A DNA stretch of 64,000 nucleotides from Macrostomum lignano (taxonomy: Eukaryota), in the NCBI GenBank assembly GCA_002269645.1, contig NIVC01002850.1, positions 1-64,000 on the forward strand, read 5' to 3'. Positions 29,010-44,003 of the stretch are shown here, one piece after another. Below the pieces are notes generated by a model. The model worked only from the letters and a program-made list of their open reading frames with translations. It was not told where the DNA came from and made no database searches. Within the stretch, counting starts at the first letter, position 1, and each line of letters opens with the position of its first letter. The position numbers and the translations under genes were made by a program.

Positions 29010-32000
29010 AGCCAGCCTCCTCCGTACAGCTGGACCCTAGCAACAGCGGCAGGTGCAACTTCCCCTACTACCTGAACCAAGGAGGCCCCTGGCTGTTCCA
29101 GTACCGCCAGGCCAGAGACCCTGCCACTGGAGAGCGGCTTCCCTCCGACGAGATTCGATACGGCGAGGCCAGCATCCCCAGCCGGCACAATCTGGGCACC
29201 ATCGTGTTGAGGCGTTTCCAGATTCGACTGGTTCGAGGCGCCGACGAGTTTCGCGAGGCACTGCTCGAGGAGAGGCGAGAGTCGCTTGACTGCGTGGAGA
29301 AGTCGGCCGGGTCGTCTGGTCGAGTGCAGACTTTTGTGGCGGCTCACTATCATACTGAGAAGTGAGGCCGATAAGGGGAGCGACACGGGGCTTTGCTGAT
29401 GAGAAATACGTGAGAATTGGAATGAGAAATAGGTGCGAGGTTGATAAGAGTAAAGAAATCAGGATTACCACTTAAAATGAGAACTATTTTTATGAGACAT
29501 GATGAGATTGATGATGAGAAATGAGAATGAGATTGATGATGAGAAATGAGAATGAGAGATTGATGATGAGAAATGAGAATGAGATTGATGATGAGAAATG
29601 AGAATGAGATCGATTATGAGAAATGAGAATGCGAATAATGAGAAATGAAATTGAGATTGATGATGAGAAATGAGTATGAGATTGATGAAAAATGAGAATT
29701 TGATTACCGGTAATGAGAAATGAGTATGAGATTGATGAGAAATACGAGCCGAAGTGAAGAGAAACAAACAGACCAATCAGTTGCTAGCCACGATCAAAGT
29801 CTGTCCATCATAAACCAGGCTAATAATAATCAGCTTACCTCTAAATTGTGAGCTGTCATTTAGAATCCAAGCCACTCACCTGTCCTCTACCATCTGGTTT
29901 TAGTTCGTCCAGCAGACTCACTGGCTACATCTGCGCTGCCTTCTCGGAGATGATTGACCAACAAAGTTTGCAGACTTTTGCTATAGCAGTTCACACAGGT
30001 GAGGAAGAGCTCAGCCCACCGTCTTCCCACTTCCCGTCTCTCGTTTGACAAAGATTTTAGTTGCCATGCATTTTTGCTTTGTCAATGTCTGTCTCTCTTT
30101 CATGCGTTTAAACACTCGCATCATCCGCAGCTTTTGTCTCAGGTAGGTCTCTGTCAGGTCCGCTTCCGCAATGCTGAGTAATGATTGAGGGATGTGGGGG
30201 GGCTTGGATTTGCTTGAGCAAGGGCAATTTACTCGAGTCATTGTTGCTAGGCCGGGGCGTGGAGATCCGTGGGCTAGGAGCTGGAGTTGAAGATCCCCTC
30301 AAATTTACACGAATTCAAGACCTGTTTGTGTCTTCAGACCCCTAAAGCAGAGAGAGTGTACACCCTGTGTGAGCGTGTGTATGAGTGCGTGCCTGCTTGT
30401 GTGTGCTCAGCAGGTGCTCAGAATATGTCGCCGAAGGCATTGCACCAGGATGTGAATTTTTAGCTCCCGTGAATATAAAAACACCGATTTTAAAAAAGTT
30501 CCCCATGGCACTCCAGATGCTAGATCTAGATCCCCATGGTTCAGGATCCGAGCTGCCGATAGGGCGAGGATGACTCATCGGACACCTTGAGGTCCCAGAC
30601 CGGTTATTAGTTTCTTGAGCAGATTGAGTGTCGCTTGGAGCGGCTCATCATAACTACAATTATCACTGCAATTAAGAGCTAAAAAGCAATTTTCTTTTTA
30701 AAGAAATTTTTTCTAGCTAAAATTGCTCATAGCTTTGAGTTTGAAATATCACTGTTTTTTCTGCTTTTGGAAAATAAATTTATATAAATAACTTTGTAAA
30801 CAGGGTCAATAAGGTGCACGAAACCTGCTTTGACAGTTAAAATTCAGCAGGTGAAATCACTGTCTAACAGGTGAAATCACAGCTTGTCTAACAGGTGAAA
30901 TCACAGCTTGTCTAACAGGTGAAATCACAGTGTCTAACAGGTGAAATCACAGCTTGTCTAACAGGTGAAATCACAGTGTCTAACAGGTGAAATCACAGCT
31001 TGTCTAACAGGTGAAATCACAGTGTCTAACAGGTGAAATCACAGCTTGTCTAACAGGTGAAATCACAGTGTCTAACAGGTGAAATCACAGCTTGTCTAAC
31101 AGGTGAAATCACAGTGTCTAACAGGTGAAATTAGTGCATAAACTATTTTTTACGTCTTTTTATTACGAGCTATTTTATTACTTATTCGCATCATTGCAGG
31201 TCCACCGCAGTCGTACAGAATGTCTGTCGCCAGTTGTATGAACGGCGATTTAAGCGATAAATGGCTGTGGACACGTGAGTCTCATCTCTAGGATTGTTTC
31301 CATGGAGAGACTGGAATATTGTCGATGAGAGGGTAGACTAAGAAAAGAGAAGTAGATAGAGAGGTAAACTGAGAGGAGAGAGGTAGATATAGAGATAGAC
31401 TGAGAGGAGAGAGGTAGATATAGAGATAGACTGAGAGGAGAGAGGTAGATATAGAGATAGACTGAGAGTAGAGTGGTAGATAAAGAGAGTATACTGAGAG
31501 TAGAGTGGTAGATAAAGAGAGTAGACTGAGAGTAGAGTGGTTGATATAAAGATAGTAGACTGAGATTAGGGTGGTAGATAAAGAGAGTAGACTGAGAGTA
31601 GAGTGGTAGATAAAGAGAGTAGACTGAGATTAGAGTGGTAGATAAAGAGAGTAGACTGAGAGTAGAGTGGTAGATAAAGAGAGTAGACTGAGAGTAGAGT
31701 GGTAGATAACTAGAGTAGACTAAGATTAGAGTGGTATATAAAACGAGTAGATAGGCAAGAGAGGTAGATAAAGAAGCAGCAGATAGAAGAAGAGACAAAG
31801 CAGAGATCCAAAGCAACACTTGAGTGCCACGCCATCCCTAAAGAAACACAAAACGAAAATCTGCAATCAATAGCTGAGCCGAACATCGCCGACTTCAAGG
31901 CCATCCAGTGTCCAAGAAGATTCTCCTACCGGGCAATCATCGATTGGGTCGACGCGAGCAATGACAGCAAACTTCGCCTAGTGGTGAGGCATATAAGCCA

Positions 32001-44000: not shown

Positions 44001-44003
44001 TGA
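29010..44003 (+). CDS. Multi-exon gene for a Cys-patterned extracellular repeat protein (A-B-linker-A-B) with GPI-anchor-like C-terminus; uncharacterised invertebrate family
   Basis: 15 exons with AG/GT ends and compatible phases: 29010-29361, 29916-29998, 31200-31274, 31874-31983, 32815-32986, 38216-38322, 38513-38687, 39490-39621, 39988-40243, 40766-40869, 40958-41146, 41395-41571, 42291-42421, 42531-42747, 43759-44003. Total 2525 nt, open to TGA. Repeated motifs GRCNFP..W / GRCTYN..GNW, GYICAAF / QSCMQVL, LCAGSW / TCLGGF. Ends NGKNAG followed by a hydrophobic tail. Confidence 0.8.
29400..29750. repeat. gatgatgagaaatgagaatga-type low-complexity array (intronic)
   Basis: Direct. Confidence 0.85.
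30845..31130. repeat. Alternating 22/24-bp array (aacaggtgaaatcacag[ct]tgtct)
   Basis: Direct. Confidence 0.93.
31330..31790. repeat. GA-rich ~30-bp array (gtagactgagagtagagtggtagataaaga)
   Basis: Direct. Confidence 0.85.
32340..32780. repeat. 23-bp array (agtctatgacccactagaatgcg)
   Basis: Period 23 (32461, 32484). Confidence 0.92.
33010..33520. repeat. Composite ~33-bp array (ggagaactgaggggttggggcagaatgtacatt)
   Basis: Direct. Confidence 0.9.
33975..34960. repeat. (CT)n-rich microsatellite with internal duplicated blocks
   Basis: Direct. Confidence 0.95.
35515..36555. repeat. 24-bp minisatellite (gtgattgttggagtgatggctaga)
   Basis: About 43 copies. Confidence 0.97.
37075..37805. repeat. 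(CTAT)n microsatellite
   Basis: Direct. Confidence 0.97.
38375..38490. repeat. ~36-38 bp unit x3 in the short intron 38323-38512
   Basis: agctgacctctacctgacacttgagattggtgactt repeated. Confidence 0.85.
38880..39415. repeat. 20-bp array (gatatctagaaggatgtcag)
   Basis: Direct. Confidence 0.95.
40265..40710. repeat. Near-perfect 60-bp array, ~7.4 copies
   Basis: Units stack vertically in the 60-nt lines. Confidence 0.97.
41610..42260. repeat. ~30-33 bp array related to the 34-bp family (tcagcctctccgctctccatcag)
   Basis: Shared tcagcctctccgctc core. Confidence 0.9.
42860..43690. repeat. (CAAT)n-derived low-complexity array
   Basis: Direct. Confidence 0.9.

Follow-up and report, generated by a model that had tools for sequence, protein, structure and literature searches.

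An intact Macrostomum lignano gene of at least 15 exons encodes an uncharacterised, taxonomically restricted protein with a GPI-signal-like C-terminus

The window analysed here is a stretch of 64,000 nucleotides from the hermaphroditic flatworm Macrostomum lignano. Between positions 29010 and 44003 its plus strand carries a real, intact protein-coding gene of at least 15 exons, which lacks its 5' end and whose product, about 845 residues long, is an uncharacterised protein. The exons are listed in Table 1. Genes for IDH and malectin are present in the same window.

A first-pass annotation of this DNA had described a 15-exon chain with canonical, phase-compatible junctions and an uninterrupted frame, and an independent rebuild arrives at the same chain: 15 exons joined by 14 GT[AG]AG...YAG introns give 844 codons without an internal stop, followed by a stop codon. 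The two alternative frames of the spliced model contain 27 and 29 stops. The plus strand of 29000-44100 holds 25 GT[AG]AG sites, 14 of which serve, in order, as donors, and each of these has a YAG acceptor of matching phase as its partner. A rough estimate that allows three frames per exon places the chance of such an open chain at about 3e-8.

The in-frame codon usage of the model correlates with that of the conserved IDH and malectin exons at r = 0.62, against −0.18 and 0.03 for the out-of-frame readings and about 0 for introns, and its third-position composition agrees with that of the conserved neighbour genes. The chosen frame has the best coding score of the three in all 15 exons, from exon 1 (+33.5 versus −25.6 and −13.8) to exons 2, 3, 10, 11, and 15, where scores are near zero. 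GC content is 0.55 in exons and 0.42 in introns, and the intron before exon 6, 5.2 kb long, is full of tandem repeats. Eight of the 14 introns are in phase 1, as is the acceptor of exon 1, and exon 8 is bounded symmetrically by this phase; an excess of phase-1 introns together with symmetric 1-1 exons characterizes extracellular mosaic proteins and the boundaries of signal-peptide exons. For exon 4, an alternative acceptor at 31844 in place of the one at 31874 would add 10 residues. Skipping of exon 2, with exon 1 joined straight to exon 3 as in UniProt fragment P0001, would end the frame of this copy early, with a stop at 31258. No poly(A) signal is found within 1.9 kb of the stop.

Table 1. 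Exons of the gene model and a candidate upstream exon (a slash marks the exon boundary; P0001 to P0004 are UniProt fragments)
Feature	Coordinates	Strand	Splice sites	Content and correspondence
Candidate first coding exon	17239..17323	+	donor ttg/GTAAGTGC, phase 1	MFSSNYRNPNSKLFVDITLLVTLLSICV plus 1 base
Exon 1	29010..29361	+	phase-1 acceptor ...CCTTTGCAG/AG; donor gaa/GTGAGG	encodes ...HYHTE
Exon 2	29904..29998	+	donor cag/GTGAGG	same peptide in P0003
Exon 3	31200..31274	+	acceptor ...CATCATTGCAG; donor cac/GTGAGT	
Exon 4	31874..31983	+	acceptor weak; donor gtg/GTGAGG	chosen frame best of three
Exon 5	32815..32986	+		exact start of P0002
Exon 6	38216..38322	+	junction also in P0002	EDMLCAGSW...
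Exon 7	38513..38687	+	junction also in P0002 and P0004	
Exon 8	39490..39621	+	phase 1-1	44 codons, 4 Cys (...YC...QC), the 'Cys linker'
Exon 9	39988..40243	+		second half begins; 100% identity with P0002
Exon 10	40766..40869	+		covered by P0002
Exon 11	40958..41146	+		exact end of P0002
Exon 12	41395..41571	+		
Exon 13	42291..42421	+		HTCLGGF...RFFHCW
Exon 14	42531..42747	+		Ala/Ser-rich low-complexity spacer begins; coding score +22.4
Exon 15	43759..44003	+		Ser/Gln-rich spacer, then putative GPI signal; stop TGA 44001-44003

The length of about 850 residues proposed earlier fits the model. The model is incomplete at its 5' end: exon 1 opens at a strong phase-1 acceptor without a methionine, and exons 1-15 contain no signal peptide. 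A scan of 15000-29009 yields a single non-repetitive, ATG-started hydrophobic peptide followed by a donor whose phase suits exon 1, at 17239-17323. This peptide is signal-peptide-like, and its junction with exon 1, across an intron of 11.7 kb, would read ...SICV-E-PASSVQ; the exon is not long enough to be given a coding score and stands as a candidate, unproven signal-peptide exon. An upstream open reading frame at 4537-5580 ends in TAA and is thereby excluded as the 5' part of the gene.

The gene had been called hidden, which holds in part. Six M. lignano entries in UniProt (A0A1I8IG87, A0A1I8JHX0, A0A1I8FCW9, A0A1I8FM83, A0A1I8JRJ8, and A0A1I8FDG7) represent fragments of this gene or of near-identical paralogues or homeologues. 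A0A1I8IG87 (P0002), which like A0A1I8JHX0 is 378 aa long, corresponds to residues 211-588 of the model, encoded by exons 5-11, and agrees exactly with six of its junctions, for which reason 'hidden' is just partly apt. All six entries are partial (127-378 aa), several skip exons or use other frames, and in none is the N-terminal half connected with the C-terminal half or the tail. P0001 omits exon 2 and is back in frame further on, a sign of a 1-nt difference relative to the window, and P0005 shifts reading frame within exon 8 relative to it. Pieces of the fragments reach 100% identity with the window; exon 1 is 92% identical to residues 1-112 of P0001, and BLASTP matches in M. lignano show 59-73% identity to the pieced query and 75-98% to P0002. 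The UniRef names of the fragments (GPCR family 2, LamG, DAO, kinesin, glycosyl hydrolase 38C) misfit their sequences, and the precomputed Pfam field is empty for P0001-P0003. None of the matches falls among the A0A267... entries, which we take to be the transcript-based M. lignano set in UniProt, and expression of the gene is therefore only putative.

The same searches delimit the taxonomic range of the gene. An exhaustive phmmer search with P0002, which covers residues 211-588 (exons 5-11), against 1.84 billion (1.84e9) representatives returns two matches, both from M. lignano, and a word-indexed search with exons 1, 9, 12, and 13 returns three, all from M. lignano. As judged by sequence similarity, this is a taxonomically restricted gene, with no detectable relatives outside M. 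lignano in the databases searched (exhaustively for residues 211-588), from which the genomes of other Macrostomum species may be missing. Flatworm genomes commonly contain such orphan genes.

The internal organization of the protein is less regular than first proposed. The first-pass annotation read it as a Cys-repeat protein built of two A-B domain pairs. Cysteines number 22 in 844 residues, an even count that amounts to 2.6% and is not high, so the Cys-repeat label does not suit the sequence outside the four-Cys exon 8. What survives of the paired domains is a short motif, SN.GRC.[FY][PN]x4-6G.W, that heads both halves (residues 10-27 and 408-423); the chance of its looser form, SN.GRC..[PN]x4-6G.W, arising twice is about 5e-5, a post hoc figure. 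Duplication itself, however, is not significant by sequence comparison of the two halves: BLASTP gives E ≥ 1.2, Smith-Waterman alignment z ≤ 1.1 against shuffles, and hhalign E values of 0.08-0.58. Furthermore, the 'CW' of motif B is confined to the second half.

Family searches are uniformly negative. Pfam hmmscan finds no family at E ≤ 10 for the 844-residue model and six domain-sized pieces of it, and ten raw segments free of stops give none at E ≤ 1; the scans yield just sub-threshold chance matches, such as GN3L_Grn1, DUF2290, and PPO1_DWL. The resemblance to DUF7042/DUF7043 suggested earlier finds no HMM match in the whole model or the six pieces. The likeness goes no further than the general notion of an invertebrate repeat protein, uncharacterised and with conserved Cys and Trp residues, and a search of one literature library for these two families found no papers. 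CUB and lipocalin/calycin, considered for the C.GG...CW and G.W patterns, have no Pfam HMM match either. A PDB sequence search returns nothing at E ≤ 10, and an AlphaFold model of P0002 as a single sequence, with a mean pLDDT of 32, is uninformative.

At the C-terminus, the Ser/Ala/Gln spacer and hydrophobic tail described earlier are both present. The last ~150 residues are, by eye rather than by tabulated composition, of low complexity and rich in Ala, Ser, and Gln; this spacer leads into N-A-G (residues ~816-818), a further spacer of 7 residues, and a 17-residue hydrophobic end. The last 17-20 residues form the sole strongly hydrophobic segment, with one residue between its end and the stop, and no other 17-residue stretch of the protein is as hydrophobic as the tail, whose mean Kyte-Doolittle value is a moderate 1.52. 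Inspected by eye, this end has the C-terminal features of a GPI-attachment signal, namely small residues from omega to omega+2, a spacer of 5-10 residues, a hydrophobic end of 15-20 residues, and no cytoplasmic tail, in keeping with the GPI-type label that had been given to the protein. It also lies where the hydrophobic segment of a tail-anchored protein would lie (a single transmembrane segment, no more than about 30 residues from the C-terminus), with hydrophobicity that is borderline for insertion by GET/TRC40 or EMC. Six N-glycosylation sequons are present, as expected by chance.

These features suggest that the protein is probably held on the cell surface by a GPI anchor, and we give about even credence to an explanation of the gene as a whole along these lines. 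An upstream exon, for which 17239-17323 is the candidate with its phase-1 join, would supply the methionine and signal peptide, and the protein would enter the ER. Its ectodomain, possibly strand-rich according to the low-confidence model of part of it, would fold as two halves that roughly resemble each other (residues ~1-361 and ~405-700), connected by a small four-Cys module and followed by an Ala/Ser/Gln-rich low-complexity stalk. The hydrophobic tail would then be swapped for a GPI anchor near N-A-G, leaving a lineage-specific surface glycoprotein on the outer face of the membrane. The N-A-G and 7-residue spacer before the tail, the phase-1 excess, the 1-1 four-Cys exon, the even number of cysteines, and an upstream ATG exon that encodes a signal-peptide-like sequence and carries a consensus donor of suitable phase all argue for this explanation. 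Against it stand a model devoid of a signal peptide, the 11.7 kb that would separate the candidate exon from it, the moderate tail hydrophobicity, the chance-level sequon count, and the fragmentary or garbled state of the other M. lignano models of the family, such as P0005 with its frame change. Because no signal peptide lies within 29010-44003, we infer the surface location and any ligand-binding role rather than observe them.

Alternatively, the mRNA may start at exon 1 through SL trans-splicing at 29012, with the SL ATG as start codon, making a tail-anchored or cytosolic protein whose C-terminal stretch would be inserted post-translationally while its bulk faces the cytosol. The M. lignano SL sequence CGGTCTCTTACTGCGAAGACTCAATTTATTGCATG does have an ATG at its end, and 30-39% of the genes of this species are trans-spliced, but use of that ATG as a start codon is undocumented in the same papers (PMC8629364, PMC5730564). 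Spliced at 29010, the SL ATG runs into a dead end after 22 codons; it is in frame only at 29012, the second AG of the CAGAG acceptor, which is in frame 0 and is exactly where P0001 begins, and the product, M-PASSVQLD..., would have no signal peptide. The sole hydrophobic segment, which lies at the very C-terminus, and an ordinary Cys content likewise agree with such a protein. The exon phases and the symmetric four-Cys exon are nonetheless typical of extracellular proteins, N-A-G and a spacer before a moderately hydrophobic tail suit a GPI signal better, and just one residue follows the hydrophobic stretch; on balance we consider this alternative unlikely.

The gene may also be real but misrepresented in part by the model, or this copy may lack function or be scarcely expressed, possibly as one of several recent duplicates, some of them perhaps decaying, in a hidden-polyploid genome; the intact frame would then be a sign of youth, not of selection, and would imply no specific function. 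Large duplicated blocks are present in the M. lignano genome (PMC5730564, PMC10468722), other copies are fragmentary or in other frames (the exon 2 skip of P0001, the exon 8 frame change of P0005), and the near-zero coding scores of five exons and the lack of a poly(A) signal within 1.9 kb of the stop point the same way. This explanation has a low probability in our estimate, given 844 open codons over 15 exons with consensus splice sites, codon usage and third-position composition in agreement with conserved neighbours, and a chosen frame that wins in every exon. Least probable is that the protein is a diverged representative of an invertebrate repeat family already known (DUF7042/DUF7043, CUB-like, or lipocalin-like with G-x-W), beyond detection by single-sequence HMM searches: the motif at the head of both halves and the 'CLGGF...CW' of exon 13, which is loosely CUB-like, would fit it, yet the Pfam and PDB searches are empty at their thresholds and phmmer with residues 211-588 finds M. 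lignano alone. The GPI-anchored reading could be carried further, with the gene as founder of a Macrostomum-specific (or macrostomorphan) family of GPI-anchored proteins with a new fold, derived from a duplicated ~350-residue module starting SN.GRC..[PN]..G.W and possibly acting in a process specific to the lineage, such as adhesion or gamete/partner recognition; we regard this extension as doubtful.

The practical worth of the model lies in annotation. A real 15-exon gene is stored in databases as several short, misnamed fragments, in the setting of a repeat-laden, hidden-polyploid genome, and the full-length model unites these fragments and adds their missing halves and the putative membrane-anchor tail. 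This is an ordinary lineage-restricted gene without bearing on a long-standing open question. If the surface reading is true, it represents another lineage-restricted membrane protein in a flatworm model of regeneration and reproduction, a species that permits transgenesis and RNAi tests.

Tail-anchored membrane proteins resemble the predicted product in having just one hydrophobic segment, placed at the very C-terminus, and the current model, like them, has no signal peptide; it differs from them in the merely moderate hydrophobicity of its tail, in the omega-site-like N-A-G ahead of that tail, and in exon phases that look extracellular. The schistosome tegument protein Sm200 is a GPI-anchored, lineage-restricted flatworm surface glycoprotein. 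Glycoproteins of this type share with the M. lignano protein a large ectodomain outside known families, a stalk of low complexity, and a C-terminal signal in which small residues, a spacer, and a hydrophobic end follow one another, a likeness of architecture rather than of compared sequences, in which the anchoring is predicted by eye from sequence rules and the signal peptide is putative.

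The exon chain was rebuilt from two inputs covering positions 29000-44100, all stop-free plus-strand segments and all GT[AG]AG sites. Taken in order, 14 of the 25 GT[AG]AG sites serve as donors, and for each a YAG acceptor is available in the phase left by the preceding exon. Splicing yields 15 exons with 2537 nt, or 844 codons, followed by a TGA at 44001-44003, in agreement with the first-pass annotation, which gives about 850 residues from 15 exons joined at 14 canonical junctions. The spliced sequence has no internal stops in the chosen frame and 27 and 29 in the other two; the chance of 845 open codons at the exon base composition is about 2e-15, or about 3e-8 when three frames are allowed per exon. 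Codon usage, with the isocitrate dehydrogenase (IDH) and malectin exons of the same window as the only reference, correlates at r = 0.62 in frame, at -0.18 and 0.03 in the other frames and at about 0 in introns, and third positions are C/G-rich as in these reference genes. By coding score the chosen frame ranks first in 15 of 15 exons, with exons 2, 3, 10, 11 and 15 near zero, and GC content is 0.55 in exons and 0.42 in introns.

The exon 5-11 half of the model is independently supported, because the 378-residue Macrostomum lignano fragment model A0A1I8IG87 spans exons 5 to 11 precisely, from the first codon of the one to the last of the other, and has six identical junctions. The weakest point is the exon 4 acceptor at 31874, which has a poor pyrimidine tract; an alternative at 31844 adds 10 residues. 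We hold with high confidence that the gene is real, that its exon chain is correct in outline and that the original observation was essentially right.

The window comes from a eukaryotic genome, as its base composition, its dense micro- and minisatellites and its interrupted coding segments show. Within 28285-45500, each flank and 10 of the 14 introns have a tandem-repeat array of their own, different from the others, with periods from 4 to 60 nt; examples are tabulated. These arrays produce long spurious ORFs on both strands, which mask the real exons. The locus is ordinary chromosomal DNA, as judged from its conserved IDH and malectin neighbours. Between these neighbours lies an inverted repeat, possibly a palindromic duplication or else a transposon bearing long terminal inverted repeats. 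Upstream, plus-strand ORF fragments at 9981-10628 (…QRAALFQAVIETVLL and NAETWTLT…) look like the C-terminal portion of a LINE-type reverse transcriptase; a 125-residue piece had no Pfam match. They adjoin tandem copies of a 30-nt unit that contains GTAAGCCC (about 9514-9872).

Features of the window and of the rebuilt gene
Feature	Position	Strand	Detail
Candidate first exon	17239-17323	+	peptide MFSSNYRNPNSKLFVDITLLVTLLSICV; donor ttg/GTAAGTGC
Donors 1-7	29361, 29998, 31274, 31983, 32986, 38322, 38687	+	GT[AG]AG
Donors 8-14	39621, 40243, 40869, 41146, 41571, 42421, 42747	+	GT[AG]AG
Tandem arrays	29502-29738, 30861-31131, 31328-31774, 32339-32773, 33030-33528
Tandem arrays	33973-34932, 35518-36552, 37077-37806, 38879-39415		33973-34932 (CT)n; 37077-37806 (ATCT)n
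Tandem arrays	40268-40713, 41615-42259, 42879-43649, 44051-45500
NADP-dependent isocitrate dehydrogenase	46820-51361 (~46.8-51.4 kb)	-	Pfam Iso_dh, E 2e-19
Inverted repeat	51792-52298 / 52941-53447		507 nt, 97% complementary, 642 nt apart
Malectin	58133-61221 (~58.1-61.2 kb)	+	Pfam Malectin, E 3e-27 and 2e-12

No Pfam match was obtained at E <= 10 for the full model or six domain-sized pieces, and ten raw stop-free segments gave only chance sub-threshold matches at E <= 1. Membership in the DUF7042/DUF7043 families, suggested by the first-pass annotation, is unsupported, and CUB and lipocalin domains were likewise set aside for want of a Pfam match in model, pieces or segments. No PDB sequence matched at E <= 10, and AlphaFold, run on A0A1I8IG87 without an alignment, reached a mean pLDDT of 32. 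Four candidate exon peptides, used as queries in a word-indexed protein search, retrieved only three proteins, all from M. lignano, and tblastn placed pieces of these on the window, the clean stretches at 92-100% identity. When A0A1I8IG87 (residues 211-588 of the model) was searched exhaustively with phmmer in 1.84 billion cluster representatives, two M. lignano fragments were the only matches, so the family is lineage-restricted at the sequence level; this orphan status covers the outer exons through the word-indexed search alone, in a database from which other Macrostomum genomes are possibly absent.

All related database entries are A0A1I8... UniProt models of M. lignano, and several disagree with the window in ways that bear on whether the gene is a weakly expressed or decaying duplicate. 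In one fragment model (P0001) the 95-nt exon 2 is left out: exon 1 runs directly into the exon 3 acceptor, and the frame is recovered further on. In the window this path meets a stop at 31258, and a 1-nt length difference is implied inside exon 3 (31200-31274); the skip could reflect either a prediction error or, in another copy, a genuine exon loss that was compensated. P0003 uses other frames for part of exon 1 and exon 5, P0005 shifts frame inside exon 8 relative to the window and P0004 has exons 7 and 9 in shortened form. These four are either faulty automatic predictions or copies that are diverging, in a genome known for large duplicated blocks (PMC5730564; PMC10468722). The intact copy is that of the window. 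A decaying or weakly expressed duplicate is one of the two main rivals, one that we consider unlikely. The UniRef names of A0A1I8IG87, A0A1I8JHX0, A0A1I8FCW9, A0A1I8FM83, A0A1I8JRJ8 and A0A1I8FDG7 do not fit their sequences, which contain no such domains as G_PROTEIN_RECEP_F2_3, LAM_G_DOMAIN, DAO, Glyco_hydro_38C or Kinesin motor, and look like mis-propagated annotation.

The proposed architecture of two A-B domain pairs lacks statistical signal. BLASTP of half against half gave E >= 1.2, Smith-Waterman scores for every pairing of the four domains lay within 1.1 SD of shuffled controls, and hhalign gave E 0.08-0.58. The halves share a short head motif (residues 10-27 and 408-423), each directly after a phase-1 acceptor. 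Its pattern, C..[PN].{4,6}G.W, has two occurrences where a shuffle is expected to give 0.005 (P ~5e-5, the pattern being defined post hoc), and a weak second collinear match pairs a 12-residue stretch with SFIMSKHTCLGG. These likenesses hint at an old duplication behind the two halves, short of proof. The 'CW' element ascribed to both halves is present in the second but missing from the first.

The model is incomplete at its 5' end, because exon 1 opens in phase 1, behind an excellent acceptor (CCTCTCCTCGCCTTTGCAG/AG), with neither a Met nor a hydrophobic N-terminus. A scan of 15000-29009 for ATG-started peptides that combine a hydrophobic core with a phase-1 GT donor behind them left a sole non-repetitive candidate. 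Spliced to exon 1 it would give ...SICV-E-PASSVQ..., making it a plausible, unproven signal-peptide-like first exon. In the long stretch 18000-26000, between it and exon 1, GC skew runs from -0.45 to -0.72 and AT skew from about -0.25 to about -0.31, an extreme asymmetry of the strands, and the ORFs are of a low-complexity Pro/Ser/Leu type. The plus-strand coding block at 4537-5580 was rejected as the 5' part, since it terminates in TAA, and was assigned to a different gene. Its 348 codons are strongly coding (score 86) with no ATG near the start; PAN-like matches are weak (E 0.04-0.06, below threshold), the remainder has no Pfam match, and the block is probably the terminal exon of another, upstream gene, one that encodes a secreted protein. 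Alternatively, the 3' end of the M. lignano spliced leader is ATG (PMC8629364); trans-spliced behind the second AG of the CAGAG acceptor, so that the exon starts at 29012, this ATG falls in frame, which would give a protein without a signal peptide.

Such a protein could be cytosolic and tail-anchored, the other main rival, which we likewise consider improbable. No 17-residue stretch of the protein is more hydrophobic than its tail (mean Kyte-Doolittle 1.52), and hydrophobicity across the whole model revealed no internal transmembrane segment. GPI signals have small residues at omega, omega+1 and omega+2, a spacer of 5-10 residues and a hydrophobic end that no cytoplasmic tail follows; with these rules applied by eye, the C-terminus is a good GPI-signal candidate. 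The Ser/Ala/Gln spacer of the first-pass annotation is there, the last ~150 residues reading by eye as low-complexity and Ala/Ser/Gln-rich. 'Cys-repeat protein' is overstated, as Cys content is ordinary (22 of 844 residues, 2.6%) except in exon 8, a symmetric phase 1-1 exon whose 44 codons include four Cys. The locus is a useful annotation repair rather than a surprising discovery. A secreted, GPI-anchored, Macrostomum-restricted surface protein is the most likely product, at about an even chance. A phase-1 intron excess and Cys modules of symmetric 1-1 phase are hallmarks of extracellular mosaic proteins, and phase 1 is a common end for signal-peptide exons; here phase 1 holds for 8 of 14 introns and the exon 1 acceptor, and together with the 1-1 four-Cys exon this tips the balance, by inference, towards a secreted GPI-anchored protein.
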